Positions 27,815 through 64,000 of a DNA stretch of 64,000 nt are shown here, in pieces (the stretch's first letter is position 1; each line of letters starts with the position of its first letter). Position numbers and translations under genes: made by a program. The stretch is taken from IMG/VR virus record IMGVR_UViG_3300021963_000023, positions 187,150 through 251,149 of that record, one strand, 5' to 3'. Below the pieces are notes generated by a model. The model ran no database searches and was not told where the DNA came from. It was given only the letters and a program-made list of their open reading frames with translations.

Positions 27815-28017
27815 GTACTAAAGCAGAAAAAGAACAAGAAGAATTGCTTTTGGAACAACGCAAAGTAAAAGCATTAGAAAAAATTGCAAATTCAATGGAT
27901 GCCTTAACCGTTTGGTTTGAGGAGGTTGATAAACAAGAATGGAGTGATAGAATTCAACATTACTTGGCTGAATGGCACAAATCAATACAACCTAAAGATC
28001 CAACAATAAATGGGTAA
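27811..28017 (+). CDS. Small hypothetical protein
   Basis: 68 aa, translationally coupled on both sides. Confidence 0.6.
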   Translation: MSTKAEKEQEELLLEQRKVKALEKIANSMDALTVWFEEVDKQEWSDRIQHYLAEWHKSIQPKDPTING

Positions 28018-33042: not shown

Positions 33043-34062
33043 ATGTTAGATAAAAAAGATTTTGTTTGTTTACAACCATTTGAGTTCACCGAATTCTTTG
33101 ATTACAAAACATATATGTGCTGTCCTAATTGGTTACCAGTTGATTTGGGTGATCCAATTGATATTAAAAACACCTGGGTTTCTGATCTAGCAAATAAGGT
33201 TAGAGAAAGTATGATAGATGGTAGTTACAAATATTGTATTGAAGCTAGATGTCCTAAATTAACGGGGTTAAAAGAAGGTAAAAGCGAAGGCTTTATGCCA
33301 AAGGAAGAGTTCTTAAGAAAAATCGATCAGTTTAAAGATCCGGTACCCAAAAGTGTTAAATTTAATTTTGATCAAAGCTGTAATCTACAGTGCCCTAGTT
33401 GTCGTTTAGAAAAAATAAATTATGTTGGGGAAGAAAGAACAAGAACGGAATTGATATTACAAAGTATTGAAGAACAATTGTCTGAGGGTCTTGAGCATAT
33501 AGAATGTACCGGATCTGGTGATCCATTTTTTTCTAGAACATTTAAGAAGTGGTTAATGACATTTAAGCCCAGTATGTACCCTAATTTAAAAAGTATACAC
33601 TTACATACCAACGGTACTCTTTGGAACGAATCTAACTGGTCTAAAATGACAAATGTGCATAGATTTATTAAGTCTGCTGAGATATCTGTTGATGCAGCAA
33701 CAAAAGACACGTATGAAAATTATACAAGGTTAGGTGGCAAATGGGAAGACATCCAAAACAATCTTAGGTTTATTGCAACATTACCCAATCTAGAATATGT
33801 TACCATGTCTTTTGTTGTTCAAAATTCAAATTATAAAGAAATGGAAATGTTCTATAAGATGTCAGAAGAAATATTTGATGACACACATATCAATTGGCAG
33901 ATATTTTTTAATAGAGTTGTTAACTGGGGAACATTTAAAAGTGAAGAATTTAAAATTGTTGATGTTGGTAATCCAGAACATCCAAACTACAAAGAGATGA
34001 TTGAAATATACCATAGACTACCTGTTTCTAATAATATTAGACATAATTTAACAATAGAGTAA
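33043..34062 (+). CDS. Radical SAM protein with N-terminal SPASM/Twitch domain
   Basis: CLQPF..CC..C; CNLQCPSC; GSGDPF. Confidence 0.85.
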   Translation: MLDKKDFVCLQPFEFTEFFDYKTYMCCPNWLPVDLGDPIDIKNTWVSDLANKVRESMIDGSYKYCIEARCPKLTGLKEGKSEGFMPKEEFLRKIDQFKDPVPKSVKFNFDQSCNLQCPSCRLEKINYVGEERTRTELILQSIEEQLSEGLEHIECTGSGDPFFSRTFKKWLMTFKPSMYPNLKSIHLHTNGTLWNESNWSKMTNVHRFIKSAEISVDAATKDTYENYTRLGGKWEDIQNNLRFIATLPNLEYVTMSFVVQNSNYKEMEMFYKMSEEIFDDTHINWQIFFNRVVNWGTFKSEEFKIVDVGNPEHPNYKEMIEIYHRLPVSNNIRHNLTIE

Positions 34063-35336
34063 TGATTGAATGTAAAAATTTAACAAATGGTTTTAGAATC
34101 GCCACCTCTGGAGGTTATTTTGCGTGTTGTCACACGTTTAATAACCCATTTAAAGATGAAAATGGTGATGAGATGGTAGCTAGCACACATTCAATTGAAG
34201 AAGGGTTAAAAAGCCCAACTAGAATGAAAATGTTAGATGATTTTAAAAATGATATTAGGCATCCGGCTTGTGTTGTTTGTTGGTCAGCAGAAGATGCTGG
34301 ATTTGTTAGTAAAAGACAAAGAGATAATGAGACATATAAAAAAATACTTGAATTTTACCCAGAAAGAAAAGATTCTGATTTATTTTTTTTAGAATTAAAT
34401 CTTGGTAACACATGTAATCTTGCATGTAGAATATGTCATATATCTGCATCATCAAAATGGAAAGAATTTCATCATGTAACAGAAACCGATGTAACTGAAG
34501 AAAGATTAGACTTTTATGTAGATAAATATTCAAAAGCATTTAGAGACAATAGTATTGTTTGGGCTGAATTAATGAGTATACTTCCTGAAGTTAGAAGTTT
34601 AGACATATATGGGGGTGAACCAATGTTGATGAAAAAGCAATGGGAGATTTTAGAAATGTCCGTTAAGTTGGGGTATTCTAAAAAACAACAAATGAGTTTT
34701 AACACAAACGGTACAATTATAAATGAGAAGTATATTGATATTTTAAGTTCATTTGCACAGTGTAGAATTGGGTTTAGTATTGATGGCGTTGGTAAAAGAT
34801 TCAACTATTTAAGACATTTTGGGAAATGGGATGTGGTTAGTGAAAATATTAATATTTGGCAAAATAAAGTTAAATTAATTCCAGACAATAAAATAATCTT
34901 TGAGGTATGTTGTACTATATCAATGCTAAATGTTCTTCATGTTTTTGAGATGGTTGATTTTGTTATTGAGAACCATTTAAAATTAATGATAGCTTTTGTT
35001 TACAACCCCAGACACTTACACATTGGATATATGCCAGAGAAGTGTAAAAAACTTATTTTAGAAAAACTTGAAGCCGAGTATGATCTTAGGATTACACAAA
35101 TTAATGATGATACAACAATAGATGATTCTGAAAAACAATATAGATGGGATGTAATGAGGCAAGCACATAAAGTTATAAACACATTAAAATTACCTGTTGA
35201 GGGTACACAAGGTGATTGGCAAGAATTTAAGAGACAAACATTAGCATTAGACATTTTAAGGAATGAATCTTTTGCTGATACATTTGCGGATTTAGAAGAA
35301 ATATATAATATTACAAAAACAACAAAATTAATATAA
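34062..35336 (+). CDS. Radical SAM protein with N-terminal SPASM/Twitch domain
   Basis: ACC..CVVCW; CNLACRIC; YGGEP; ends TKLI. Confidence 0.9.
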   Translation: MIECKNLTNGFRIATSGGYFACCHTFNNPFKDENGDEMVASTHSIEEGLKSPTRMKMLDDFKNDIRHPACVVCWSAEDAGFVSKRQRDNETYKKILEFYPERKDSDLFFLELNLGNTCNLACRICHISASSKWKEFHHVTETDVTEERLDFYVDKYSKAFRDNSIVWAELMSILPEVRSLDIYGGEPMLMKKQWEILEMSVKLGYSKKQQMSFNTNGTIINEKYIDILSSFAQCRIGFSIDGVGKRFNYLRHFGKWDVVSENINIWQNKVKLIPDNKIIFEVCCTISMLNVLHVFEMVDFVIENHLKLMIAFVYNPRHLHIGYMPEKCKKLILEKLEAEYDLRITQINDDTTIDDSEKQYRWDVMRQAHKVINTLKLPVEGTQGDWQEFKRQTLALDILRNESFADTFADLEEIYNITKTTKLI

Positions 35337-36810: not shown

Positions 36811-38109
36811 ATGGAAAAAAATTATAATAAAGAAACCTTTTGTGTTGCTCCATGGATTGCATCGCATTTAAGTACATTTGGAAATGTTGTTCCTTGTTGT
36901 TTATATAAACAAGAACGAGTTTTCGGAGAACTTAAACAAGGTGTTCCATTAAATGAAATGTATAATTCTGATGTTGCAAAGGATATTAGAAAAAGATTGT
37001 GGAATGGTGAGAAGATAAATGAGTGTCAAATTTGCTGGTATAGAGAAGAGGTTTCAAAAGGGAAGAGCCAAGTTGATAGTTACAGATTTAATTTAAACAA
37101 ACAGTTTGAAGATGAAATAGAAAACATTGTGGATAACACAAATGAAGATTTTTCATTAAAAATTATACAATTTAAACACTTAGATCTACGTTTTGATAAT
37201 AAATGTAATTTAAAATGTAGGATTTGTAATCCCGGTTTTTCATCATCATTATATAAAGAGTATAAAGCGTTAGGCTTCAATAATTTTAAAGATTATGGTC
37301 AACCATATAGTATGTCGGTTGATGATGATGAGTTTAATTTTATTTTAAGCCAATTAAAGCATGTTAAGTCATTATTTTTTGCTGGTGGCGAACCATTAAC
37401 ACAAGATAAACATTATCAAATATTACAATACTGCATAGACAATGACTATGCTAAAAATATAACAGTGTGGGTTACAACCAATTTCACAAAATTATATTAT
37501 AAAGATTACAATATAATTGAGATGTGGAAGAAGTTCAAAGCTGTTGAGATAACAGCGAGTATAGATGGGTTTGAAGAGAGAGGTCAATACCTTAGAAGCG
37601 GATCCAAATGGTCTGAAATAGTTGAGAATAGAAAAACACTTTTGAGAGAACTACCAGATACTTTTTTTGGAATTGTACCAACAATTAACATAATGAATAG
37701 CTATACCATAATTGATTTATATAAAAATTGGATAGAAAATGGCTACTTACTTCCCGGTAAAATCCATATTAATTTATTGACACATCCAGAACACCTTCAG
37801 ATAAAAATGCTACCTGAAAGACATAAAGAGGTTCTTAGAATATTGTATAATAACCTTATAATTTGGATAAAAAATAACATAGCGGATAACAGTGAAGCAC
37901 AACGAGACATAGGACAATTTGAATTTGTAATAGACTTGTTAAATCAAGAAAGAGATGAAGAAATGTTCCAAAAGTTTTTAAAAATGACAGACATGGTTGA
38001 CACATTCAGAGGTGATGATTTCTTTTCTGTGTTTACTGAGTTTAGAGATTTTATTGATCCAAATGTTATCATTGAATTACCCAAAGATGATAATGTAAAA
38101 TTATTATAA
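36811..38109 (+). CDS. Radical SAM protein with N-terminal SPASM/Twitch domain
   Basis: FCVAPW..PCC..CQICW; CNLKCRIC; AGGEP; ends VKLL. Confidence 0.9.
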   Translation: MEKNYNKETFCVAPWIASHLSTFGNVVPCCLYKQERVFGELKQGVPLNEMYNSDVAKDIRKRLWNGEKINECQICWYREEVSKGKSQVDSYRFNLNKQFEDEIENIVDNTNEDFSLKIIQFKHLDLRFDNKCNLKCRICNPGFSSSLYKEYKALGFNNFKDYGQPYSMSVDDDEFNFILSQLKHVKSLFFAGGEPLTQDKHYQILQYCIDNDYAKNITVWVTTNFTKLYYKDYNIIEMWKKFKAVEITASIDGFEERGQYLRSGSKWSEIVENRKTLLRELPDTFFGIVPTINIMNSYTIIDLYKNWIENGYLLPGKIHINLLTHPEHLQIKMLPERHKEVLRILYNNLIIWIKNNIADNSEAQRDIGQFEFVIDLLNQERDEEMFQKFLKMTDMVDTFRGDDFFSVFTEFRDFIDPNVIIELPKDDNVKLL

Positions 38110-39370: not shown

Positions 39371-39805
39371 ATGATATACTGGTTAACTGGACAACCCGGA
39401 GCAGGTAAAACAACCCTAGCAAAATACTTGGTGGAATATTTCCCTCAAAACGAGGTTACTCACATTGATGGGGATGATCTAAGAGACATCTTTAATAATA
39501 AAGACTATTCCATTACAGGAAGAAGACTAAACATCCAAAGAGCACAATACATTGCGCAATTCATGCATAGTAAAGGACACAATGTCATTGTATCCTTAGT
39601 TTCACCGTATAGAGATCAGAGAGAGGCATTTAAGTTCAGCACATCGGTTGTTGAGATTTATGTTCACACCACAGAAGATCGAGGTAGAAATCAATTCCAC
39701 GTTGAGGAATATGAACCACCATTAGAAAATTTTATAGATATAGACACAACAATAAAGAACGAGACAGATTCATATTATGAACTGTTAAAAAAATTATCAT
39801 TATGA
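39371..39805 (+). CDS. cysC: Adenylyl-sulfate (APS) kinase
   Basis: WLTGQPGAGKTT P-loop, IDGD.LR, SLVSPY, YEPP. Confidence 0.85.
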   Translation: MIYWLTGQPGAGKTTLAKYLVEYFPQNEVTHIDGDDLRDIFNNKDYSITGRRLNIQRAQYIAQFMHSKGHNVIVSLVSPYRDQREAFKFSTSVVEIYVHTTEDRGRNQFHVEEYEPPLENFIDIDTTIKNETDSYYELLKKLSL

Positions 39806-40182
39806 GTAAAAAATACGCAATGTATGTTGGTAGATGGCAAAATTGGCATAAGGGCCACGAATGGCTTATTAACCAACAATTAGATAAAGGAAAAGATGTG
39901 TGGGTTGCAATTAGGAACGTGCCAACGGATGAAAATAACCCTAAGACCGCACAGCAAGTTATGATGGATCTAAGTGAAGAACCTTTCTTTAGAGAAAATT
40001 CACAAAGAATTAACATATCAATTATTCCTGATATTGAGAGCATTAATTATGGTAGAGGGGTTGGTTATGATGTAATATACCACGAACCTCCTGCGGATGT
40101 GGCGGTTATTAGTGGAACGGCAATTAGAACCGGACATATGACACCCGATGGTACAATAACATATGACCAAACTAAAGGATAA
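39802..40182 (+). CDS. HxGH-family (cytidylyltransferase-like) nucleotidyltransferase
   Basis: GRWQNWHKGH, YGRGVGY, ISGTAIR. Confidence 0.75.
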   Translation: MSKKYAMYVGRWQNWHKGHEWLINQQLDKGKDVWVAIRNVPTDENNPKTAQQVMMDLSEEPFFRENSQRINISIIPDIESINYGRGVGYDVIYHEPPADVAVISGTAIRTGHMTPDGTITYDQTKG

Positions 40183-40391
40183 TGATAGTAGAAAAGAAAA
40201 GACATATAGCTAAAACCATCTCATATCGAATTGTAAGTACCTTAATTGGATTCTTATTAATGTGGATGATTAGTGGGTCGATTAAAGTTGGTGCGGCTTT
40301 TGGTGTTGCAGAATTGATTTACAAGCCAATACAGTATTATCTACATGAAAGAATATGGTATAGATGGATTAAGTATGGTCTTAAAAAATAA
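40182..40391 (+). CDS. DUF2061-like small membrane protein
   Basis: KTISYR...YYLHERIW. Confidence 0.75.
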   Translation: MIVEKKRHIAKTISYRIVSTLIGFLLMWMISGSIKVGAAFGVAELIYKPIQYYLHERIWYRWIKYGLKK

Positions 40392-40400
40392 TAAAACGCT

Positions 40401-40880
40401 ATGATTAACACATATCAAAATTTATTATCTGAAGAAGATTTGTTTTTCTTGAACTCGATATGTTTAAATTTTGTGGAAACACAAGTACCATATAAAAATA
40501 ATAACTATGTTAGAAAAAGTTTAAACGTAAAAGAAGAATTATTAGAATACCAAGAAAGGTGTTCAAAATATTTACCAGATGGGTATAAATTAAGTGGGTT
40601 ATGGATTAATAAGGTAACCGAAGAAACAAATATTAATGATGATTTTCATAACGATGAGGCGGACTTAACTATCATTACCTACATTAATGAAGATTTTGAG
40701 GGTGGGGAATTTGAGTATTTTTTAAAAGATAAAGAAATAAAAATAACACCTCAAATAAATCATACAATTATGTTAAATAAAAAAACAAAACACCGAGTTT
40801 TAAATGTAATTAGTGGATGTAGATTTAGTTTAATTTCATTTTATACAACAATAAAAAAAGAAGAAAAAACACTAATATGA
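40401..40880 (+). CDS. 2OG-Fe(II) oxygenase
   Basis: HND, FEGGEF, HRV..V.SG.RFSL; ends KTLI. Confidence 0.8.
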   Translation: MINTYQNLLSEEDLFFLNSICLNFVETQVPYKNNNYVRKSLNVKEELLEYQERCSKYLPDGYKLSGLWINKVTEETNINDDFHNDEADLTIITYINEDFEGGEFEYFLKDKEIKITPQINHTIMLNKKTKHRVLNVISGCRFSLISFYTTIKKEEKTLI

Positions 40881-41440
40881 TTGATAATATAGAAATATTT
40901 GAAAACTTTCTATCACCTGAAGAATGTAATATTATTTTAAATAAATGTAAGAGTGAATTAACATTAGAAACTGCTAAAGTGTATAATAATAAAAATAATA
41001 AAAATAGTGAAAATACACGTAGAAAATCGTCTATTGCTTGGATATCTGATTTAGGATTTTTAAATGAAAGATTAACAAGTAAATTAAGAGAGTCATTCAA
41101 TATAAACGGAATGGAAGTTACTGGTTTAGGTGATTATCAATTCACTGAGTATAAAGAACAAGAATACTTTGATTGGCATGTAGATAGTACTGATTTGTTA
41201 TATAGAGATAGATTCGCATCTATAGTAATTCAGCTAAATGATAACTACACCGGTGGCATATTGGAAATTAAAAACAGTAAAGGTGAAGTTGTACCAATAG
41301 AGAATAGAATTGGAACATTATATGTTTTTAATTCAAGATTACTTCATAGAGTAGTACCTGTGGTTGAGGGTGTACGTTATTCGTTAGTTAATTGGATATC
41401 ATTGGTTAAAACCGATTTTAAAAAACAAAATTTAATATGA
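40877..41440 (+). CDS. 2OG-Fe(II) oxygenase (prolyl-4-hydroxylase-like)
   Basis: WHVD, YTGG, HRVVPV.EG.RYSLV.W; ends KQNLI. Confidence 0.85.
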   Translation: MIDNIEIFENFLSPEECNIILNKCKSELTLETAKVYNNKNNKNSENTRRKSSIAWISDLGFLNERLTSKLRESFNINGMEVTGLGDYQFTEYKEQEYFDWHVDSTDLLYRDRFASIVIQLNDNYTGGILEIKNSKGEVVPIENRIGTLYVFNSRLLHRVVPVVEGVRYSLVNWISLVKTDFKKQNLI

Positions 41441-42054
41441 TAAACGGGTACCACATATTTGATGATATAATTCCAGAATTAAATCAAAATAAATTAGAAG
41501 AATATGTTAAGTTTTCAAATTTAAAATGGAATTATCAACACAACATTACGGGGCTATATGGTGGAACGGATTCATTAGAATTACCCGCAAATGTTTTAAA
41601 GGGTATTGATATTACAGACACTACAATTCTTAATATAATAAATTCAATAAAGTTAAATTTACTAAATAAACTTAATTTGGAATTTGAAAAGGATTATCGA
41701 TATAAAATAAATTGGACCACCCCTATAGGAAAAAAATATGATTTTAAAAATTTAATACATATTGATATGGATGTGGCCCATATTGCTATTGTTTATTATA
41801 TAAACGATACCGATGGCAACACTATTTTTTTAAATAATAAAAATGGAAATTCTTCAGAATCCCATCAAAATAATTTTAAAGGTGTCAATTTGGATGATTT
41901 TGAAATTGTAAATAGAATACCACCCAAAAAAGGTAGGGCGGTTATATTTGATGGTAACATTTATCACTATGGCGAATACCCAACAATAACCGATAGATTT
42001 ATAATTAATTTTGATTTAGTTGGTAAAAATAAGAACAAAAATAAATTAATATAA
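41437..42054 (+). CDS. 2OG-Fe(II) oxygenase-like protein
   Basis: HID, VYYIND.DG.T, PKKGR..FDG..YH, R..IN; ends NKLI. Confidence 0.75.
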   Translation: MINGYHIFDDIIPELNQNKLEEYVKFSNLKWNYQHNITGLYGGTDSLELPANVLKGIDITDTTILNIINSIKLNLLNKLNLEFEKDYRYKINWTTPIGKKYDFKNLIHIDMDVAHIAIVYYINDTDGNTIFLNNKNGNSSESHQNNFKGVNLDDFEIVNRIPPKKGRAVIFDGNIYHYGEYPTITDRFIINFDLVGKNKNKNKLI

Positions 42055-42055
42055 T

Positions 42056-42694
42056 ATGGAAAAGATATTTTTTGATGACACAACATACATTTGGAAAACC
42101 AAATTAAATTATACAGGTGATAAATCATCTTTTTTAAAAGAAGCGTACTCTCTTATAGAATCCCAACCTAAAGTTAAATCAGATGGATTTGGATATAAAA
42201 GAGAATGGAACGAACATTTAAATTTTATTGGTGATGTTAAGGTTGAAACAAAATTAGATGAAATTTTTAAAATCGGTATTAATAAATGTAAAGAAATTTA
42301 TAATGAAAAAAATATAAATTACAATAAAATCAATACAGACTCTTGGGTTAATGTTGTTCGATCAAAAAATCCAGTACAAGACAATTTTCACAATGGTAAA
42401 AAATATCATATACATACCGAAATTAATAAAGGAAACAAACAATTTATTCCACACTATACATATGTTTATTATATTCAAATGCCAGATGTAATGAATGGCG
42501 ATGATGGTGTATTGTGTTTTTTAGGTGAAAATAAGAAAGAATATTTCATCAAACCAGAAGAAGATGATTTAATTATTATGGAGGCACATATCCCACACTC
42601 TCCAAATAGTGCACCAAACTCCACATTAGATAGAATAGTTATGGCTGGAAACGTTGGTTTTGATTTTATTAAAAAAGAAAAAACAATATTATAA
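42056..42694 (+). CDS. 2OG-Fe(II) oxygenase-like (DSBH) protein
   Basis: WVN, HIH, YVYY, PEE.DL...H.P, RIV.AGN; ends KTIL. Confidence 0.65.
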   Translation: MEKIFFDDTTYIWKTKLNYTGDKSSFLKEAYSLIESQPKVKSDGFGYKREWNEHLNFIGDVKVETKLDEIFKIGINKCKEIYNEKNINYNKINTDSWVNVVRSKNPVQDNFHNGKKYHIHTEINKGNKQFIPHYTYVYYIQMPDVMNGDDGVLCFLGENKKEYFIKPEEDDLIIMEAHIPHSPNSAPNSTLDRIVMAGNVGFDFIKKEKTIL

Positions 42695-43416
42695 TGCTAG
42701 TAGAAAATAAATTTTTATTTGTAAATCTACCAAGATGTGCTTCAACCTCTTTTCATATATCATGTTTAAGAAGTGGATTTAAAATTGAACATTACGGCCA
42801 ATCATTTGTAGACAATTATCATACACCAATTAATTTAACACTTAGTAATGAAGAGCTAGCAGACAACATGGTTCATCTTCATGAAAGATTAGATGTGTTA
42901 CTTTCAAAATTTGGGAATGAATATGATATCATATCCATAAAAAGAGATAAGTACGAAAGATTCTTATCATTGTGGAAGCATATAATCGATATAGCACACA
43001 TGGAAGGTAATATCGAATTATATAATATATTTAAAAAACTAGAGTTAGAAGATATTTTATTTTATAATTATTCAGATTTAATATCGAATGAGGAGTCTGT
43101 AATATCTGAATTTGTGAGAAGAAATAAAATTGAAAAACATATGACAGACATTCTTTATACTATGTTAATTATTTTAGTTAGACATGTCTCATTTTGGCAT
43201 AATAATAATCCCAAAATAAAATGGTTTGAATTTGGTGAGTTTACAGAATTAGAAGAATGGGTTTCTAATAAAACAGGTAAACCATTTAAAATGGGGAAAT
43301 CAAATGGAAGTCAACATTTTGATTGCAAATTAAAAATGAATAGTGATTTCATAAAAAGATATAATAATATTTATGATTATTATGATTTTCAAAAAAATGT
43401 TAAGACACTAATATAA
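42694..43416 (+). CDS. Sulfotransferase (family 2-like)
   Basis: FVNLPRCASTS PAPS loop, RDKYERFLS; ends KTLI. Confidence 0.7.
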   Translation: MLVENKFLFVNLPRCASTSFHISCLRSGFKIEHYGQSFVDNYHTPINLTLSNEELADNMVHLHERLDVLLSKFGNEYDIISIKRDKYERFLSLWKHIIDIAHMEGNIELYNIFKKLELEDILFYNYSDLISNEESVISEFVRRNKIEKHMTDILYTMLIILVRHVSFWHNNNPKIKWFEFGEFTELEEWVSNKTGKPFKMGKSNGSQHFDCKLKMNSDFIKRYNNIYDYYDFQKNVKTLI

Positions 43417-43417
43417 C

Positions 43418-43720
43418 ATGATTAACACCCCTAATATCGATTATAAAGAAATATTTGAAGCCTGGAAAATTTCACTCAAACCAACACTAAAACAAGAAGA
43501 ATTGGCTAAACTTAGGCTTGAGGTTTGTTTGGGGTGTAATTATAGAAAAGAAGTGGTTAAGGGGTTAAAATGGAGCACTCTTTGTGGAAAATGTGGATGC
43601 CCCTTAAATAAAAAAGTGTTTTCCCCAAATTATAATTCCTGCCCAGAAAAATTATGGGGTGATATTGATTCTAATTATTTGGAACCTCTTAACCCCAAAA
43701 ATAAAAACACTTTAATATAA
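43418..43720 (+). CDS. Small Cys-rich (Zn-finger-like) protein
   Basis: RLEVCLGC...CGKCGCPL..K....CP...W; ends NTLI. Confidence 0.65.
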   Translation: MINTPNIDYKEIFEAWKISLKPTLKQEELAKLRLEVCLGCNYRKEVVKGLKWSTLCGKCGCPLNKKVFSPNYNSCPEKLWGDIDSNYLEPLNPKNKNTLI

Positions 43721-43771
43721 ATAGTATATATCTATATATGTATATACAAATTTTAAAATGGTGATTAGTGA

Positions 43772-43779
43772 TATTTATA
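43772..43779 (+). promoter_or_regulatory. TATTTATA putative late-promoter motif
   Basis: Upstream of the ATP-grasp-Hint gene; same motif as before the fibre genes. Confidence 0.5.
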
Positions 43780-43805
43780 TAATAAGAAATAAAAAATAAG
43801 ATTTT

Positions 43806-45299
43806 ATGAAAGCAACAATAATTGGTAGTGATTTTTTACAAAAAGATGGTTCGGTCAAATTTTTGGAAATAAATACAAACACCACAATCTATAATGAGGG
43901 CGCGGATTTGTTAGAATATGACGCGTTATTTAATATGTTAAATGTTAATAATATTACAGAATTTCATTATATATGGACGGAAAATGATGCATATAGCCCA
44001 TTAAATCAGGCACACAGATTTGTGCAAATATTAAAAACAAAATGTGAGGAAAATAATATATCATATACTGATCATATTGTGCCAATGAATTCGGTAACTG
44101 TACCTTTTATTGAAGACGCTAATAATAAATTTATCTTAAGACAGTCCTTTGATACTACCGCATTGGTAGATGAAACATATTGTGCTGATAAATTTGAATT
44201 TTTTAATTTAATGAAAGATTCACAATATATCCCCAAAACACATTACACATCGGATACATTAAATTTAAATACTTTGGATGAGGTGAATTATACTGATACT
44301 GAAAACCCAAACGTATTAATAAAATATCGTTATCCACAATATGATAAATCATTATACCCGGCCCTATATGCAGTTTCTAATAATACCGAATTATCTGATA
44401 CAATAAATTCTGCTGAAAGTAATTTTTTAGTTCAAGAATTTATATTTTCAGAAGAAAATTTGGTGGAGGGTAGATATTCGATTATAAGAGGGATTGATAT
44501 CATATATGGGTCTAATTTAGATGTTATTAATATGGGTGGCTATAGTCAATCCACGATAATACCGGTTTTATTTGCAACTACAGAACTTATTCCCAATACA
44601 AAAAAATTAAACCAAAAAAGTAGATACAAATATATTACAAAAGATGTTGGTGGATCAAAAGGAAAAGATTATCATACCGATGATGATTCAAATATTTTAA
44701 ACTATGATGGCTCATTAACAAATGTTAGTACAATACAATTGGGTGATTATGTTCGTTCTATTAATTTTGTGGATTCAAATGAAAATGAAGCTAAAGCTTT
44801 TACTAATGAAATTTTAACATACGGTTGGGATAGTACATTACAGCAATCAAATGACACATTAGTACCATTACAATCTGAATTAGTGGGTATGATATCATCA
44901 TCAGTTGAAATGGTAATGATAAAAATAACATTAGAAGATGGTAGAACTTGGTCAGATACTCCTGCGTGTGTATATTATATTGAAGAAAAAGATTCAACAG
45001 CAACTAGGTTTGAAAAGGTAAATAGTCTATATGTTGGTGATAAATTAGTTATAACCGATTCAAATACTAATCAATTAACAACCATAACAATTACGGGATT
45101 AGAAATGATATATGAAACCAAAACAATTTACACATTAGATTTTGCACCTTCTGATTTATTCTTAGTTGATATTGGCGATTTTCAATTTAGTGTAATGCAT
45201 AATGGTTGCTGGTGTAGTTATTCATATTGTGGTAACTGGTGTTATTCATCATGGTGTCCAACCTGTCAATATGGCGGGTTTCAAAAATTTCAACCCTAA
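43806..45299 (+). CDS. Circularly permuted ATP-grasp-like domain + Hint domain + C-terminal Cys-rich peptide
   Basis: N-terminal D......KFLEINTN, later VLIK and LVQEFI; Hint-like SNILNYDGS...IQLGDYVRS ... LYVGDKL ... IYTLDF...VMHN; then GCWCSYSYCGNWCYSSWCPTCQYGGFQKFQP. Confidence 0.7.
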   Translation: MKATIIGSDFLQKDGSVKFLEINTNTTIYNEGADLLEYDALFNMLNVNNITEFHYIWTENDAYSPLNQAHRFVQILKTKCEENNISYTDHIVPMNSVTVPFIEDANNKFILRQSFDTTALVDETYCADKFEFFNLMKDSQYIPKTHYTSDTLNLNTLDEVNYTDTENPNVLIKYRYPQYDKSLYPALYAVSNNTELSDTINSAESNFLVQEFIFSEENLVEGRYSIIRGIDIIYGSNLDVINMGGYSQSTIIPVLFATTELIPNTKKLNQKSRYKYITKDVGGSKGKDYHTDDDSNILNYDGSLTNVSTIQLGDYVRSINFVDSNENEAKAFTNEILTYGWDSTLQQSNDTLVPLQSELVGMISSSVEMVMIKITLEDGRTWSDTPACVYYIEEKDSTATRFEKVNSLYVGDKLVITDSNTNQLTTITITGLEMIYETKTIYTLDFAPSDLFLVDIGDFQFSVMHNGCWCSYSYCGNWCYSSWCPTCQYGGFQKFQP

Positions 45300-45333
45300 G
45301 ATTTTTAATAAAAATATAAAATAAAAACATATC

Positions 45334-45480
45334 ATGGCAAAGACCCCAAAAATAAGAGAAGAAAGACCATCAACTGTTATCAAGTTAGTAATTAGTCCAC
45401 TATCTACGGATGTAAAGACAAAAATATCAACAGCATTTCAAGCAGTTGTTACCGCTATAAAAGATAAACACTTATCATAA
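45334..45480 (+). CDS. Small 48-aa basic protein (not in ORF track)
   Basis: ATG 45334 to TAA 45480: MAKTPKIREERPSTVIKLVISPLSTDVKTKISTAFQAVVTAIKDKHLS; A-rich leader; fills the gap between neighbours. Confidence 0.6.
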   Translation: MAKTPKIREERPSTVIKLVISPLSTDVKTKISTAFQAVVTAIKDKHLS

Positions 45481-45515
45481 GTTAAAAAGACGAATGTTTG
45501 TTCATCCATTTATAT

Positions 45516-46085
45516 ATGATAAATCATTCAATCAATAATAACGTATTTACACAAACCGAATGTCTTGATATAATTGATTTTTGTATTCAACACGGTAAAC
45601 CTTTTTCATATCGTCCGAATGAATTTTGGGATTGTAGAAGAATACATGATGAGGGATTTAAGGAACAAATAATTACTTCATTAATGAATAATTATAAAAC
45701 CGGGAATTTTAATTTATGGTTTGATTTTGATGATTTTAATCTAAGGAATTTTCTTATTAGTTTAACATCTTATTACGATGGTAGATACCTAAATTTACAC
45801 AAAGATATTGATAGTGAGTTAACGTCGGTAATTGTATTATCAAATGGATTTGAAGGTGGTCAATTCGCATTAAGTGATAGTAACAGACCAGATATTCATT
45901 TTAATAAAATGGATGATATTACTACTTATGATTTAAAAATTGGTGATATGATATCCTTCAATGGGTCAAAAACCTATCATGGGGTTTTACCGGTCACAAA
46001 TGGTACACGATATGCCTTAAATATTTGGATGGATAACATCAATTCTGACCGATTAAAACGTAAAGTTGAAAAAACATTGATATGA
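45516..46085 (+). CDS. 2OG-Fe(II) oxygenase
   Basis: LHKD, FEGGQF, HGVLPV..G.RYAL; ends KTLI. ATG 45516 preferred over TTG 45498. Confidence 0.8.
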   Translation: MINHSINNNVFTQTECLDIIDFCIQHGKPFSYRPNEFWDCRRIHDEGFKEQIITSLMNNYKTGNFNLWFDFDDFNLRNFLISLTSYYDGRYLNLHKDIDSELTSVIVLSNGFEGGQFALSDSNRPDIHFNKMDDITTYDLKIGDMISFNGSKTYHGVLPVTNGTRYALNIWMDNINSDRLKRKVEKTLI

Positions 46086-46579
46086 GTATATTAATTGTTG
46101 CATTACCTAGAACCGGTTCAACTTCATTATTATATAAATTAGCAAAAGAAAAGGGATTAACTCCGATATTTGAACCATTCGATAATAGTGGAAGATTTAA
46201 GTATAATGGTGAAAAAAACGTAGTCCTTAAAACAATAATATGTCATCACCCAAACAATTTTGAATTAAGTAAGTACTTTGACAAGGTAATATTATTATCT
46301 AGAAAAAATATATTAGAATGTGTAGAATCTCACGCATACCAAATCTACTTCTCAAAAAAGAAAAATTACAATTCAAATCATCAATATTATTACGAAGAAG
46401 TACCATCTAAGTTATTTGATTTATGTTATAATGATGTAATGAAATGGAATAAGGATTTGAGTGAATTATCTTATAGACTTAACACCCCAATTACATATTA
46501 TGAAGACATATATGATATCAATAGTAATGAAAGATTACGAAAAGGGAATAAAAGTGAATTTAATAAAAAACTAATTTAA
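46082..46579 (+). CDS. Sulfotransferase-like P-loop protein
   Basis: ALPRTGSTS, FEPF, LSRKN, YYED; ends KKLI. Confidence 0.7.
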   Translation: MSILIVALPRTGSTSLLYKLAKEKGLTPIFEPFDNSGRFKYNGEKNVVLKTIICHHPNNFELSKYFDKVILLSRKNILECVESHAYQIYFSKKKNYNSNHQYYYEEVPSKLFDLCYNDVMKWNKDLSELSYRLNTPITYYEDIYDINSNERLRKGNKSEFNKKLI

Positions 46580-46584
46580 TTATT

Positions 46585-46992
46585 GTGAATTATACAACAC
46601 CATATGATTTTTTAAAAAATTGTGTAATGACTAGAATCAAACCAAGTGGGGTACACGGTGTTGGTGTTTTTGCAATTAGGGATATTAAAAAGGGTGAAAC
46701 CGTTTTTGAATTTTGGCAAGGAAAAACGGGGATATATGAAATTTCTAAAGCTGAGTTTGACACCTTTTCAGAGGAATTACAAGATTTTATAAGAGCAATG
46801 CGTGGTCACCCGTATAAAGTTAAACTTACAAATGGGTGTGTATATGGTTGTACAAATCATTATATTAATACAAATTTTGAAAACGGAACGGTTGATTGTT
46901 TCACATTTAAAGCATTGGCCGATATTCCATTAAATGAGGAGTTGTTTAGTAATTATGGGAATAACCATAGACATGAATATAAATTAATATAA
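46585..46992 (+). CDS. SET-domain protein
   Basis: SGVHGVGVFAIRDIKKGE, YIN, DI..NEEL..NYG; ends YKLI. Confidence 0.75.
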   Translation: MNYTTPYDFLKNCVMTRIKPSGVHGVGVFAIRDIKKGETVFEFWQGKTGIYEISKAEFDTFSEELQDFIRAMRGHPYKVKLTNGCVYGCTNHYINTNFENGTVDCFTFKALADIPLNEELFSNYGNNHRHEYKLI

Positions 46993-46993
46993 A

Positions 46994-47557
46994 ATGATTA
47001 TTACAATACTATGTGAACCTAGAAGTGGATCTACAAATTTGGCCAATTGGTTTTTTATAAGAAAGGATTTCACGGTATTATATGAACCATATAATATTAA
47101 GTCAGAATGGTACAAGAACAAAATACCACCCCAAAACTGGGAATTTACAACTGAACATCTATTAATAAAGGAAATTTATTCAAAAGAAATAAATTATACC
47201 GATTTATTAGACATATCAGACAAAATCATTATTCTTTATAGAGAAAATGAATATGAACAATCGCTATCCTGGGAAAATGCTGTTGCAACAAATAACTGGG
47301 ATAGGCCGTGGGTTTATGAAGAAAACTCTGAAAAAAAACAAACCGTAGGGTTGGATTATTTTTATGATATAAAAGAAGGTATTAAAGAAAATTATATTAA
47401 TAAGAATTATTTCACAATATCATACGAAGAATTATATTATAATAATGGGTTTCAAAGGGTTGTGGATTACCTTAATATTGATGGTGTTGAGAACACTGGG
47501 TTCCCATATGGCCAGAAATATAGAATTAATACTGACAAACCCAGGCCATTAATTTAA
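46994..47557 (+). CDS. Sulfotransferase-like P-loop protein
   Basis: EPRSGSTNL, YEP, LYREN...Q..S, ISYEELY; ends RPLI. Confidence 0.7.
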   Translation: MIITILCEPRSGSTNLANWFFIRKDFTVLYEPYNIKSEWYKNKIPPQNWEFTTEHLLIKEIYSKEINYTDLLDISDKIIILYRENEYEQSLSWENAVATNNWDRPWVYEENSEKKQTVGLDYFYDIKEGIKENYINKNYFTISYEELYYNNGFQRVVDYLNIDGVENTGFPYGQKYRINTDKPRPLI

Positions 47558-55408: not shown

Positions 55409-56173
55409 ATGGAACAAGGTTACAAATATGATAGATCAAATTTTATCAATAACCCATTTGATGAAAAACTAATGCAAATTTCTGAAAGTATGTCTTTTGC
55501 ATTACCAAAATATAAAGCATATAACTTTGTGGGTGGAGCACAAATCACACCTTACGCGAGGTTAAAACAATGGTTATTAGAACTAAGAGGTAGAGAAGAT
55601 GCTGTAGAGCATTTGGAATATACCGTTAGAAAGATGGAACTTGAAATCCAAATGGATGAGGAAAGTAAAGAATTCATAACTGACCCCAAAAGAAAGGAAA
55701 TGGTTAATATAACCATTGCTGATAAAATGATTGATTTAAGAAAGTTTAATAGAAATCTTAAAGATGCATATAGAGAAAGACAAGGGTTTATTGATTTGAT
55801 AAAAGAATTCTTGGAATCTGATCAGGCGATTTTACCTAACGGAACGAAATTAATTGATGTATTTGGAAATCCCGAATTAGAAGAAAAATATGAACATGAA
55901 TACTGGACCGTTCGTATGGCAAAGCAAGCTATGCTAGATATGATTTCATATGGTAGAATTGGTACTGGTAATTTAGATTCGATTCTTATGATGGACCCAG
56001 AACAACAAAAACAAGTGCTAGCATTAGCATCCGCATATACTATCTCAACCGATAAAAATATAAACCAATTAATGACAGAAGCAACAACAAACAATTTTAC
56101 AATTGAAGAGTCATTAAAAAATCAGTTAAGATTAAGTGAACCAAATAAAACAGAAACAGAAAAATTATTATAA
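55409..56173 (+). CDS. Hypothetical helical/coiled-coil protein
   Basis: 254 aa, E/K-rich; ends EKLL. Confidence 0.6.
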   Translation: MEQGYKYDRSNFINNPFDEKLMQISESMSFALPKYKAYNFVGGAQITPYARLKQWLLELRGREDAVEHLEYTVRKMELEIQMDEESKEFITDPKRKEMVNITIADKMIDLRKFNRNLKDAYRERQGFIDLIKEFLESDQAILPNGTKLIDVFGNPELEEKYEHEYWTVRMAKQAMLDMISYGRIGTGNLDSILMMDPEQQKQVLALASAYTISTDKNINQLMTEATTNNFTIEESLKNQLRLSEPNKTETEKLL

Positions 56174-59649: not shown

Positions 59650-59739
59650 GGGGAGGTGGGTGAGTGGTTTAAACCGACAGCCTCCGAAGCTGCTATTGGA
59701 CTTAACATTCAATCGAGAGTCCGAATCTCTTCCTCCCCG
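59650..59739 (+). tRNA. tRNA with CCG anticodon (nominally Arg) on a type II, Ser-like body
   Basis: Acceptor GGGGAGG/CCTCCCC, discriminator G; D arm GGT-GAGTGGTTTAA-ACC; anticodon arm CAGC-CTCCGAA-GCTG; variable stem ATTGGA/TTCAAT; T arm GAGAG-TCCGAAT-CTCTT; CCA not encoded. Confidence 0.85.
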
Positions 59740-59772
59740 CAATTTTATAAACTTTTCTTAAACAAAAACAAA

Positions 59773-62195: not shown

Positions 62196-63026
62196 GTGTT
62201 CATTAATATAATCTGATAGATTAATGATTGGATACCAATTCAATACAAATTTAGCTAAATTACTTTCACATAAAGTTTCCTGAGCTTCACCTGGTTTATC
62301 ATCAAAATATAATCGATCTTGCTTAAACATATCCGCAACTTCATTTAACGAAAAGTTTTCACCTCTACCTAGTTCAAAAATATGCCCCCAAGCATTTCTT
62401 TCTTGTATCTTAATTAATCCATTAACAATATCGTCAATGTGTGTAAAATCTCTCCTCTTGGAACCGTCGCCATATATTGTTAAAGGTTCACCATCATCAT
62501 ATTGTTTTTCCCACCTACCAATCACAGTACTATAACCGCCATCCCTTAAATGATATGGGCCGTATACATTATAAAAACGAGTAATAGAAGCATTTAATTT
62601 AAAATGATCCTGATAAAGTTTAATAATCTCCTCACCAATATCTTTACTGAATGTGTATGGATTTTTAAACTTACCGCTATGGTGTGAACTACTTCCAGCA
62701 TAAACTAATGGTATATTATTGTTAACACAATACTGTGCTATGTTTAATGTACCATTTGTGTTTGTTTCAAAATATTCTACTGGCTGTTCAAATGATGGTT
62801 GTATTCTAGCTATTGCAGCTAAATGATAAACCATATCAAACTTCACATCATGCAAAATACTTAAATCTTTAACGTCACCAAATATATAATTTGCACCATC
62901 TTGATGATTAGTTATATATCCACTTAAATAGTTATCAATTGATGTGACACCATGTCCATCTTTCAATAATCTCTTAATCAAATTGGTGCCAACAAATCCA
63001 GCACCGCCAGTTACAAGTATATTCAT
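62181..63026 (-). CDS. NAD-dependent nucleotide-sugar epimerase/dehydratase
   Basis: ILVTGGAGFVG, HLAA, YxxxK (YTFSK), RFYNVYGP, RDFTHIDD. Confidence 0.9.
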   Translation of the reverse strand: MNILVTGGAGFVGTNLIKRLLKDGHGVTSIDNYLSGYITNHQDGANYIFGDVKDLSILHDVKFDMVYHLAAIARIQPSFEQPVEYFETNTNGTLNIAQYCVNNNIPLVYAGSSSHHSGKFKNPYTFSKDIGEEIIKLYQDHFKLNASITRFYNVYGPYHLRDGGYSTVIGRWEKQYDDGEPLTIYGDGSKRRDFTHIDDIVNGLIKIQERNAWGHIFELGRGENFSLNEVADMFKQDRLYFDDKPGEAQETLCESNLAKFVLNWYPIINLSDYINEHKKGA

Positions 63027-64000
63027 TAAATTATCTTTTTAATATCAATCATCATATTACCAATTTGATACTCTCCTGGTTCATAATGAGGGATTGAAAG
63101 TCTTAGTTTTTTAAGTGTTTCTAGATCCTGTTCATCAAATGGGCTGGTTTCATAAATCATCACGTCAACGTCCTCTGTAAGGATAAATTTCGATCTTAAA
63201 TCATATTTGGTATTCTTCTGTTCATTCTCTATATAGTCCTCAGGAATGAGCCCTAAATTAATTTTATCAAAGAATGGTTCTATCTGTAATAAATAAGCTC
63301 TACTTTTAGTGGTTAATCCCATATTGAATGTTTTATATTTGAAGTCATTATCCTCCCAATACCTGATCTCACTAAACGCTGAGATGGGTAACCCCCATTT
63401 TCTTATGAAGTTTCTGTTTGATGACACTTCAATTAATTGTCTATTATTCTTCATATCATCACTAAATCTAGATGTCTGAGAAACAAAATGATATGTAATG
63501 GCTGAATCACAAGTCTTTAGTTCATAGCCCTTTAATTTTGCTCTGATTAGGAAGTCATCATCTTCACAGAAGCATGGTACAAAACTAAACCCATCAAAGA
63601 ATCCAACATCCTCAAACATCTTTTTGTATCCAGACATAAAGAATACAGCACCATCAGATAACTTATCATTTTTATTCCATTGTTTAACATAGGTATTAAA
63701 ATTAAAGTCATCGAAATTATCGAATCCACTTCCAAGATCTAACAAGACCTTACCAGGTCTTTGGTGACCTCTGAATATTGGTGGCTCAATAGTGGTATAT
63801 GATAATAACATATTCGGTTGTAACAATCTTTCAATTGCTTCTAAGAATCCTTCACCAATAACCATATCATTATGTATCAAGACTAACTTATCGGTATCAA
63901 CTAATTTAATACCGGTATTATAGGTGTCAGAGAATGTTAATCTATCATCATCATGAATATAGGACACATTATTATCCACTAATGATGATAACCATTCCTT
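63026..64000 (-). CDS. GT2-family glycosyltransferase (5'-partial)
   Basis: LIHNDM, FCEDDDF..R, YHFVS; frame stays open to the window edge; ends KKII. Confidence 0.75.
   Translation of the reverse strand, partial: KEWLSSLVDNNVSYIHDDDRLTFSDTYNTGIKLVDTDKLVLIHNDMVIGEGFLEAIERLLQPNMLLSYTTIEPPIFRGHQRPGKVLLDLGSGFDNFDDFNFNTYVKQWNKNDKLSDGAVFFMSGYKKMFEDVGFFDGFSFVPCFCEDDDFLIRAKLKGYELKTCDSAITYHFVSQTSRFSDDMKNNRQLIEVSSNRNFIRKWGLPISAFSEIRYWEDNDFKYKTFNMGLTTKSRAYLLQIEPFFDKINLGLIPEDYIENEQKNTKYDLRSKFILTEDVDVMIYETSPFDEQDLETLKKLRLSIPHYEPGEYQIGNMMIDIKKII

Follow-up and report, generated by a model that had tools for sequence, protein, structure and literature searches.

A conserved Lys-x-Leu-Ile C-terminal tail on the tailoring enzymes of an uncultivated phage, proposed to be recognised by a common partner

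Background

Tandem arrays of dioxygenases, Trp halogenases, sulfotransferases and PAPS synthetases occur in cyanophages and bacteria, and have been predicted to modify peptides or proteins (Iyer et al. 2010, PMC2938197). A related array lies in a large uncultivated phage, IMG/VR record IMGVR_UViG_3300021963_000023, of which we analysed a 64,000-nucleotide stretch (positions 187,150 to 251,149), hereafter the window. An earlier note, made from the sequence alone, reported that ten genes around a Hint fusion protein end in a basic-x-Leu-Ile tag, with related ends on four more distant genes. It proposed that the tag is selected at the protein level and is a docking or targeting signal, a degron, or the carboxylate to which an ATP-grasp domain ligates a Hint-released Gly-peptide. 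Why should enzymes of different families share one short C-terminus? We first asked whether the tail is real and conserved, then whether nucleotide sequence alone could account for it, and finally what might read it.

Genomic context of the tagged genes

The features of the window that bear on these questions are as follows; counts in brackets are tagged members of each gene family among the loci compared.

34062..35336 (+): radical SAM enzyme (Pfam Radical_SAM), tagged, ends KTTKLI (7 of 13).
36811..38109 (+): radical SAM/SPASM enzyme (Pfam), tagged, ends DNVKLL.
39371..39805 (+): APS kinase (Pfam APS_kinase, E 4e-17), untagged conserved core gene, ends KLSL (0 of 15).
39802..40182 (+): HxGH nucleotidyltransferase, NMNAT-like (profile search against PDB hits NMN adenylyltransferases, E 5e-6), untagged conserved core gene (0 of 21).
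40182..40391 (+): DUF2061 small membrane protein (Pfam, E 2e-16), untagged conserved core gene (0 of 21).
40401..40880 (+): 2OG-Fe(II) oxygenase (Pfam), tagged, EEKTLI (10 of 10).
40877..41440 (+): 2OG-Fe(II) oxygenase (Pfam, E 3e-14), tagged, KKQNLI (45 of 46).
41437..42054 (+): 2OG-Fe(II) oxygenase-like (weak Pfam hit), tagged, NKNKLI (8 of 9).
42056..42694 (+): 2OG-Fe(II) oxygenase-like (weak Pfam hit), tagged, KEKTIL (35 of 40).
42694..43416 (+): probable sulfotransferase (PHROG Gal-3-O-sulfotransferase, E 3e-4; PRxxSTS N-terminal motif), tagged, NVKTLI (43 of 43).
43418..43720 (+): 100-aa Cys-rich, zinc-finger-like protein with invariant Cys residues in alignment, tagged, NKNTLI (30 of 36), followed by 85 nt of spacer.
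43806..45299 (+): untagged centre of the island (0 of 65); an N-terminal domain with a weak ATP-grasp/glutathione-synthetase-like fold match, a Hint domain ending in HN, and a 25-33 aa Cys/Trp/Tyr/Pro-rich peptide.
45334..45480 (+): conserved 48-aa ORF directly downstream of 43806, untagged; found by tblastn in 68 of 75 sequences and called as a gene in three of them (L069-L071).
45498..46085 (+): 2OG-Fe(II) oxygenase (Pfam, E 5e-9), tagged, VEKTLI (23 of 24); the ATG at 45516 is the likely start.
46082..46579 (+): probable sulfotransferase (PRSGSTS loop in alignment; weak NodH and CurM sulfotransferase hits), tagged, FNKKLI (43 of 43, despite tail indels).
46585..46992 (+): SET-domain methyltransferase (Pfam SET, E 7.5e-8), tagged, HEYKLI (3 of 3).
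46994..47557 (+): probable sulfotransferase, paralog of 46082 and of the same family, tagged, KPRPLI, followed by 76 nt of spacer.
55409..56173 (+): protein of unknown function (PHROG 1409), tagged, ETEKLL.
63026..63979 (-): protein of unknown function next to a sugar epimerase, tagged, DIKKII.

The observation made in the earlier note is correct, and the evidence for it is stronger than was reported there. All ten genes between 40401 and 47557 end in LI or IL, the four outlying genes end in LI, LL or II, and the Hint fusion and all 19 structural genes at 1-25.5 kb lack the tag, as the note had stated. By comparison, [LI][LI] precedes 5.8% of non-gene stop codons in all six frames and interior composition predicts about 2.9%, such that ten tagged genes among 11 consecutive genes would arise with P about 4e-12. 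The note's description of the tagged proteins as having unrelated folds overstated the diversity of these ten genes, as five are 2OG-Fe(II) oxygenases, although from distinct families, and 46082 and 46994 are paralogs. It becomes fully right when relatives are added, because Trp halogenase, radical SAM, methyltransferase, DUF6071 and DUF6734 proteins are also tagged, and at least eight unrelated folds carry the tail.

Conservation of the tail

The tag is conserved in over 60 related metagenomic phage loci, down to 46% identity, in which 41% of non-redundant genes end in [LI][LI]. Gene families tend to be either almost fully tagged or untagged, with 18 families at least 80% tagged and 23 at most 10% tagged. 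Of 120 halogenase homologues down to 42% identity, 118 end in two hydrophobic residues. The consensus is K-x-x-K-[T/S/K/N]-[L>I]-[I>L]-COOH, carried on a tail of 8-14 residues that varies in sequence and length while the terminal LI stays fixed. The last residue is I in 73% and L in 27% of tails, and Lys is enriched at -6 to -3. Position -2 is tolerant (T 31%, S 22%, K 19%, N 12%, E 4%), being mostly K in the family of 46082 and mostly E in a halogenase family.

The tail is not a general property of these genomes, as structural regions of the same clade show only 2.4%. It is also an addition to these enzymes, since long-form halogenases (2.9%) and the homologous enzyme arrays of phages Syn9 and HTVC008M lack it. 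Within the operon the tagged proteins are macromolecule-tailoring enzymes, namely 2OG oxygenases, Trp halogenase, radical SAM enzymes, SET protein, methyltransferase and probable sulfotransferases, while the PAPS-supply enzymes (APS kinase and nucleotidyltransferase), DUF2061 and the Hint protein are untagged. Tagged genes flank the Hint gene symmetrically. Genes at positions -6 to -1 and +1 to +4 around the 43806-family gene are 63-100% tagged, although the loci were collected using 43806 as bait and its co-occurrence with tagged genes is therefore partly built in. Some tagged genes (34062, 55409 and 63026) lie 10-18 kb from 43806.

Selection at the protein level

Shared ends could in principle reflect TTAATATGA-type stop/start overlaps, a translation-initiation motif for the next gene, AT-rich composition, or plain inheritance among paralogs, and the abundance of 2OG oxygenases in the window would fit the last of these. 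Overlapping genes are indeed tagged more often (59%) than genes with more than 30 nt downstream (23%), and ATA is over-used at the last Ile (0.77 against 0.42). However, the ATA excess is confined to overlapping genes, and uncoupled genes, which keep the tag, show ATA 30 to ATT 30. In the family of 43418, the terminal Ile codons are ATT 13 and ATA 8. Codon use at -1 Leu and at -2 Ser/Thr equals interior use, and the orthologous family of 42056 uses AGT, AGC, TCG, TCT, TCA and TCC for Ser at -2. Starts preceded by long spacers carry no TTAATA motif, and the tightly overlapping Syn9 enzyme array has no tag. Together with the composition null of 3-6% and the 2.4% in structural regions, these tests refute an artefact, which we consider very improbable. 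The note had named genome-wide LI ends, overlap nucleotides and lack of conservation in homologues as grounds for rejecting its proposal, and none of the three was found.

The Hint protein at the centre of the array

Foldseek comparison of 43806 with the Hedgehog C-terminal domain, BIL domains and mini-inteins gave E 4e-8 to 1e-5 with target TM up to 0.8 (E 4e-8 and TM 0.78 to Hedgehog and inteins), and H465 and N466 are invariant. The protein therefore contains a Hint fold, as the note had claimed. Splicing needs a nucleophilic +1 residue (Cys, Ser or Thr), a requirement that is not satisfied by the family: among 120 homologues the residue after HN is S in 54, G in 33, A in 16, T in 8, N in 5, D in 3 and Y in 1, which suggests cleavage rather than splicing. 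It is Gly in the window, but the Gly-peptide of the note is not a conserved feature. The peptide that follows has six Cys, is rich in W, Y and P, and has variable loops.

The ATP-grasp assignment of the N-terminal domain is weak, and rests only on a Foldseek match to glutathione-synthetase-type ligases (E 2.7e-4, TM 0.33) and on RimK Pfam hits in 2 of 31 members at E 0.06. The ligation proposed in the note, in which this domain would activate the C-terminal carboxylate of tagged enzymes and join it to the N-terminus of the Hint-released peptide or to an amino acid, thus seems unlikely to us. Glutathione-synthetase-type ligases activate a peptide C-terminal carboxylate, tagged genes surround 43806, and the HN junction with a non-nucleophilic +1 residue fits release of a free peptide amine. 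An invariant E-x-N triplet near the N-terminus could be the ATP-grasp metal site in a permuted arrangement, although this is only our inference. On the other hand, the known ATP-grasp enzymes that act on protein C-termini (RimK on S6, tubulin-tyrosine ligase, LysX on LysW) use acidic termini, whereas the present tails are basic and aliphatic, with E at -4 (13%) and -2 (4%) and never at the end. Covalently tagging some twenty different enzymes has no obvious purpose, and the domain could equally act on its own tail peptide, as in graspetide-type ligases.

Possible functions of the tail

The interpretation given in the earlier note was partly supported: selection on the protein held, while the evidence does not single out one of its three proposed functions. 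Our best guess, held tentatively and at less than even confidence, is that the tail is a carboxylate-dependent docking motif for a common partner. It is a short linear motif kept by selection on the protein, on a flexible extension after the last fold element, and marks the tailoring enzymes of a phage peptide/protein-modification island (hydroxylases, halogenase, sulfotransferases, methyltransferases, radical SAM enzymes and a zinc-finger protein). As the motif is fixed to the very end of each chain, we infer that it is read together with the free carboxylate by one common partner, which would bring interchangeable enzymes to one shared substrate or scaffold. The best candidate partner or substrate is 43806, together with its 48-aa neighbour, as 43806 lies at the centre of the tagged array and carries a putatively self-cleavable peptide rich in residues (Cys, Trp, Tyr and Pro) that such enzyme classes are known to modify. 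Our analysis establishes the motif, its conservation at the protein level, its restriction to the island and the Hint fold, but docking, the identity of the receptor and the peptide as substrate are inferred, as would be any degradation directed by the tail. No PDZ, TPR or other known C-terminus-binding domain appeared in about 50 window proteins scanned with Pfam. The tolerance at position -2, the distance of some tagged genes from 43806 and the weak fold assignment of its N-terminal domain also count against this reading.

The main rival is a degron read by a host AAA+ protease, ClpXP-type or another, or by a phage-encoded one, which would keep the tailoring enzymes short-lived or clear them at a set time. 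We regard this as possible but unlikely. A nonpolar C-terminus with upstream Lys resembles the MuA C-terminal ClpX signal RRKKAI (PMC8138137), ClpX is reported to accept other hydrophobic C-terminal signals (PMC5143411), and a host factor would explain why the motif stays the same across phages down to 46% identity. In MuA, basic residues are likewise followed by a small and an aliphatic residue at the very end, but here there are two aliphatic residues, the Lys spacing differs, and the tail is shared by a whole enzyme set rather than one regulator. Cofactor-supply genes of the same operon, presumably expressed together, are never tagged, which timing control does not predict, and no benefit of destabilising some twenty biosynthetic enzymes is evident. 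The ssrA-type LAA end is absent, with no Ala among the listed residues at -1 and 0, and no tmRNA was found in the window.

A localisation signal directing the enzymes to the inner membrane, a protein compartment or the procapsid is also unlikely. A shared C-terminal peptide on unrelated enzymes is the logic of the PTS1 peroxisomal tripeptide, in which upstream basic residues are favoured, and of encapsulin cargo peptides. Moreover, the small membrane protein DUF2061 is a conserved core gene, Lys-rich tails with hydrophobic ends can bind anionic membranes, and sugar and glycosyltransferase genes lie in the same island. However, only two residues are consistently hydrophobic and they sit next to the charged carboxylate, which is poor for membrane insertion, and the glycosyltransferases themselves are untagged. 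Enzymes needing O2, 2OG, FADH2 or SAM would not work inside a capsid. The tail (basic at -3, S/T at -2 and two aliphatic residues at the end, K-[ST]-L-I) does not fit PTS1, [SAC]-[KRH]-[LM]-COOH, and no organelle is evident. Nor does it fit the GSL-type encapsulin peptide, as Gly does not exceed about 2% at any listed position and no shell-like gene lies within or next to the array.

Comparison with known systems

The tail also recalls PDZ class I ligands, x-[S/T]-x-hydrophobic-COOH, in which a scaffold gathers several enzymes. The hydrophobic last residue with a free carboxylate agrees, as the motif is always terminal despite tail indels. Ser or Thr occupies -2 in 53% of tails, but K, N or E is found there in whole families, and no PDZ domain was found among the window proteins scanned. 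The tail does not fit a sliding-clamp binding motif of the QL[SD]LF type, which has Gln four to five residues from a hydrophobic end, as Q is 6% at -3 and 4% at -4.

The closest arrays are those of Iyer et al. (PMC2938197), which contain the same enzyme classes, likewise assembled from distant families next to phage tail-fibre genes. What differs here is the shared C-terminal tail, which Syn9 and HTVC008M lack and which the passages of that paper we examined do not mention, and the Hint protein, as no 43806 homologue exists in 50,697 phage records. In RiPP pathways, many different tailoring enzymes are directed to one ribosomal precursor by a single shared recognition element, the leader peptide read by an RRE. 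By analogy, a more speculative reading, which we consider possible but improbable, is a phage-encoded, RiPP-like assembly line with inverted recognition, the shared peptide being on the enzymes rather than on the precursor. A universal C-terminal address of five to seven residues would plug interchangeable enzymes onto the self-cleaving ATP-grasp-like/Hint precursor, whose putative leader would be a 460-residue ATP-grasp-like plus Hint module that removes itself. The six-Cys peptide would then be halogenated, sulfated, hydroxylated and cross-linked, and finally released by Asn cyclisation, and new enzymes would join the pathway simply by acquiring the tail.

Genomic context of the enzyme island

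The 64 kb examined are the last part of the 251-kb IMG/VR contig UViG_3300021963_000023 and were supplemented only by a further 8.5 kb upstream taken from locus L075. GC content is low (26-38%) and all but two of the called genes lie on one strand. Bases 1-25.5 kb hold large structural, fibre-like genes, whereas bases 25.5-64 kb form an enzyme island with methyltransferases, GT2 and GT7-like glycosyltransferases, seven radical SAM or SPASM genes, an APS kinase, an HxGH nucleotidyltransferase, a DUF2061 protein, at least five 2OG-Fe(II) oxygenases, a SET protein, probable sulfotransferases and sugar epimerases. A DNA search of the 7-kb region of tagged genes against 50,697 phage records found nothing, nor did a tblastn search with the product of 43806, the Hint fusion gene at the centre of the island, and no cultured relative carries the system. 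The nearest isolate homologues of the enzymes are in T4-like cyanophages and pelagiphages, at 25-39% identity. Features of the island outside the tagged array include the following.

28010-29437 and 29434-30843 (+), two paralogs that combine a GT7 catalytic domain (beta-1,4-galactosyltransferase-like, a mostly eukaryotic family) with a concanavalin-A-like lectin domain
31679-33037, 36811-38109 and 38109-39332 (+), radical SAM proteins in which Pfam places the SPASM domain at residues about 10-76, N-terminal to the radical SAM core (about 113-290), the reverse of the usual order
39371-40391 (+), an APS kinase, a small HxGH (NMNAT-like) nucleotidyltransferase and a DUF2061 membrane protein, forming a conserved untagged trio upstream of the tagged array
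59650-59740 (+), tRNA-Arg(CCG), overlapped by the mechanically called ORF 59656-60657, so that this ORF, or at least its GTG start at 59656, is probably spurious

The nucleotidyltransferase of the trio may act as a non-canonical sulfate adenylyltransferase, which would give the phage a PAPS supply. We also looked for a phage tmRNA whose tag might end in LI, but the window contains none and has only the tRNA-Arg.

Occurrence and conservation of the C-terminal motif

All fourteen C-termini listed in the earlier note are present, and its observation is therefore confirmed. Ten of the eleven genes between 40401 and 47557 end in LI (nine) or IL (one), the exception being the Hint fusion 43806. The background is low, as [LI][LI] precedes 5.8% of the stop codons that do not end a called gene, counted in all six frames, and interior amino-acid frequencies predict about 2.9%. 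The probability of 10 out of 11 is about 4e-12. The note's statement that the tagged proteins have unrelated folds is only partly right for the window, since five of the ten are 2OG oxygenases, although from families too distant to cluster together, and 46082 and 46994, both probable sulfotransferases, are paralogs.

Searching IMG/VR with 43806 returned 62 loci at 46-100% identity, and further loci were found with the probable sulfotransferase 42694, with two distant halogenases and with a structural gene. Genes were called with a simple longest-ORF rule; C-termini are defined by stop codons and so are robust, but some untagged ORFs may be spurious. Across 791 gene clusters (90% identity) from the island loci, 323 (41%) end in [LI][LI]. 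Families are bimodal: of 50 families with at least four members, 18 are at least 80% tagged and 23 are at most 10% tagged.

Members ending in [LI][LI] in selected gene families of the island loci
Family 0, 2OG oxygenase: 45 of 46
Family 1, probable sulfotransferase: 43 of 43
Family 3, probable sulfotransferase: 43 of 43
Family 8, halogenase: 23 of 24
Hint fusion: 0 of 43
Nucleotidyltransferase: 0 of 21
DUF2061: 0 of 21
APS kinase: 0 of 15

The sequence logo of the tail is K at -6 (44%), two variable positions, K at -3 (54%), then T (31%), S (22%), K (19%) or N (12%) at -2, L (76%) or I (24%) at -1, and I (73%) or L (27%) at 0. Of the 120 best database homologues of the tagged halogenase, down to 42% identity, 118 end in two hydrophobic residues, mostly preceded by a Lys-rich stretch. 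Family alignments show the last conserved strand of the fold, then a linker of variable sequence and length, and then the fixed terminal pair; family 3 has many indels in the linker.

Selection at the protein level

Four tests favour selection on the protein rather than on the nucleotide sequence. First, synonymous codon use at the tag matches interior use: Leu at -1 is coded by TTA at a frequency of 0.69, against 0.62 in gene interiors, Ser at -2 is spread over TCT, TCC, TCA, TCG, AGT and AGC much as in gene interiors, and Thr behaves likewise. Within one orthologous family, Ser at -2 is coded by AGT 10, TCG 6, TCT 4, AGC 3, TCA 2 and TCC 2, a spread that a nucleotide signal cannot explain. 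Second, the one codon bias, ATA at the last Ile (0.77 against 0.42), exists only where the next gene overlaps (ATA-TGA or ATA-TAA-TG). In genes without a coupled downstream gene the counts are ATA 30, ATT 30 and ATC 2, which is close to interior usage. Third, start codons preceded by long spacers show no TTAATA-like motif, but only mild A-richness at -13 to -10 and no Shine-Dalgarno signal. Across all loci, the regions upstream of starts likewise have no Shine-Dalgarno signal and only A-richness at -13 to -10, which together with the 26-38% GC and contigs of 230-330 kb resembles, in these general features alone, the freshwater Bacteroidetes-infecting huge phages of PMC9723584. Fourth, the motif is anchored to the stop codon and not to the next start, as it persists before spacers of 76-85 nt (after 43418, encoding a Cys-rich protein, and 46994) and in 23% of genes with more than 30 nt downstream. 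Explanations of the motif as an artefact are rejected.

Distribution of the motif

The earlier note had proposed that equally frequent LI ends across the genome would count against a dedicated signal, and we found instead that the tag is island-specific. Structural-region loci of the same clade give 7 of 291 (2.4%), and in the window 0 of 19 structural genes are tagged against 14 of 41 island genes (Fisher P 0.003). When genes are indexed on the 43806-family gene, positions -6 to -1 are 63-100% tagged and positions +1 to +4 are 70-95% tagged, while the gene itself is tagged in 0 of 65 cases. Most loci were collected with 43806 as bait, so its co-occurrence with the tag is partly built in. Beyond about eight genes the rate falls to 25% or less.

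The tag is also a clade-specific add-on. The Trp halogenase and four 2OG/phytanoyl-CoA dioxygenases of Pelagibacter phage HTVC008M have unrelated ends, as do the ten-gene dioxygenase/halogenase array and the two halogenases of Synechococcus phage Syn9, although those genes overlap just as tightly. Among 50%-identity representatives, the short halogenase clade (about 405 aa) is tagged, while the 137 long-form homologues (about 500 aa, 36-45% identity) show 2.9%. The edge of the tagged clade was sought through two distant halogenases, P0253 and P0156, whose contigs (1.4-4.9 kb) were too short to show whether a 43806 homologue is present; in one such locus, L073, the halogenase and its upstream neighbour are tagged and thymidylate synthase is not. 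In other distant relatives, an epimerase-2OG oxygenase fusion (ending KKKII) and a protein of about 830 aa and unknown function (ending GII) are also tagged, on the opposite strand from the main array (locus L069, 764-2461 and 2458-4953; locus L070, 2955-5444).

Tagged and untagged proteins

Tagged proteins are enzymes that typically tailor peptides or proteins, or other macromolecules. They comprise several 2OG-Fe(II) oxygenase families, a flavin-dependent Trp-halogenase family, some radical SAM/SPASM paralogs, a SET protein, a class I methyltransferase, DUF6071 and DUF6734, two families with sulfotransferase-type PSB loops and weak sulfotransferase hits, and a 100-aa Cys-rich, zinc-finger-like protein. 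Profile searches of PDB sequences with the zinc-finger family and with family 1 were uninformative. Untagged proteins are the enzymes that would supply PAPS (APS kinase and the NMNAT-like nucleotidyltransferase), the DUF2061 membrane protein, carbamoyltransferase, Hsp20, UvdE, a helicase, the glycosyltransferases and all structural genes. As an Hsp20 gene lies in some loci, we considered whether the tag might be the I-x-I docking motif of small heat shock proteins, but rejected this because the two aliphatic residues of the tag are adjacent and position -2 is polar.

The central Hint-domain protein

The untagged product of 43806 gave no hit in Pfam, and a profile of its family gave no hit against PDB sequences; only fold comparison revealed the Hint domain. 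Its AlphaFold model (pLDDT 71.5) matches the Hedgehog autoprocessing domain, BIL domains and mini-inteins, with E 4e-8 and target TM up to 0.8, and the His-Asn pair is invariant. The N-terminal 345 residues resemble glutathione-synthetase-type ATP-grasp ligases only weakly (E 2.7e-4, TM 0.33), with RimK Pfam hits in 2 of 31 members. The family has 648 database clusters, all about 495 aa and all unnamed. Two features lie at and beyond the end of this protein.

45204-45299, the C-terminal ~30 residues of 43806, which here and in the homologues in loci L001-L062 are a peptide of 25-33 residues after the invariant Hint His-Asn
45334-45480 (+), a 48-aa ORF directly downstream of the Hint fusion, conserved in 68 of 75 sequences, untagged and ending in KHL[S/G/N]

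The peptide has a conserved six-Cys frame with variable inter-Cys loops, and its composition is C 21%, G 12%, W 10%, Y 10%, S 10% and P 9%. The +1 residue is S/G/A/T/N/D, so C-terminal cleavage by Asn cyclisation is plausible and splicing is not. It looks like a self-released, possibly heavily modified peptide rather than an extein. The 48-aa ORF has no assigned function and is a candidate partner of 43806.

Possible roles of the motif

The analysis demonstrates that the motif is a protein-level, strictly C-terminal short linear motif on a flexible tail, that it was acquired by many unrelated enzyme families, and that it is confined to one island surrounding a Hint protein, whose self-cleavage is predicted from its fold and sequence. 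What the motif does, what recognises it and which substrate is modified are inferred. Strict terminal anchoring points to recognition that includes the free carboxylate. The sorting within one operon, with macromolecule-tailoring enzymes tagged and cofactor suppliers untagged, points the same way as the symmetric clustering around 43806, and together they tentatively favour a recruitment signal that gathers interchangeable enzymes on a common partner or substrate. The composition of the 43806 tail peptide (Trp, Tyr, Pro, Cys) matches the kinds of residues such enzymes are known to modify, but this too is inference.

The main rival, which we consider less likely, is a degron, because a basic stretch followed by an aliphatic C-terminus resembles the MuA ClpX signal (PMC8138137). 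The suggestion in the earlier note that the tail is a ligation substrate is possible but poorly supported. A localisation signal is likewise doubtful, and a membrane-targeting amphipathic helix was rejected as the main model because only the last two positions are consistently hydrophobic. The interpretation offered in the note is thus partly supported, with selection on the protein upheld and the choice among its proposed functions not settled by these data.

Arrays of dioxygenases, Trp halogenases, sulfotransferases and PAPS synthetases in phages and bacteria have been described by Iyer et al. 2010 and were predicted to modify peptides (PMC2938197), and the island described here belongs to that kind. 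The shared C-terminal tail and the ATP-grasp-like/Hint centre are not mentioned in the parts of that study consulted, are absent from the Syn9 and HTVC008M arrays tested here, and were not found described in the literature searched. The logic resembles that of PTS1, encapsulin cargo peptides, PDZ ligands and C-terminal degrons. The motif fails the sequence definitions of PTS1, ssrA-type degrons, encapsulin peptides and clamp-binding motifs, and fits the PDZ class I pattern only in part.

A single short C-terminal address shared by about twenty unrelated enzymes is how eukaryotic organelles and encapsulins sort cargo, and we found no description of such a system for a phage biosynthetic island in the literature searched. 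If the tail is a docking peptide, it would show how a phage keeps a fast-changing set of horizontally acquired tailoring enzymes focused on one substrate, and would offer a minimal, portable tag for building enzyme assemblies. If it is a degron, it would be a new, transferable degradation signal and an example of a phage placing a whole pathway under proteolytic control. Either way, it gives a concrete handle on the long-unexplained dioxygenase/halogenase arrays of marine and freshwater phages and ties them to a previously unnamed, widespread Hint-domain protein family.

Other recurring C-termini

Two further recurring endings were seen in the window, neither of which matches the enzyme tag.

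51970-53109, 53128-54234 and 54248-55357 (+), three tandem paralogs (PHROG 1417, unknown function) that share the conserved C-terminus GHCGWR followed by zero or one residue
18263-19659 and 19979-23449 (+), three small structural paralogs and a 1156-aa protein that end in L-T-x-I-x type sequences (LTRIN, LTERIR, LTRIK, LTEIV)

The first is a second, unrelated C-terminal motif within the enzyme island, and the other is a separate recurring ending in the structural module.
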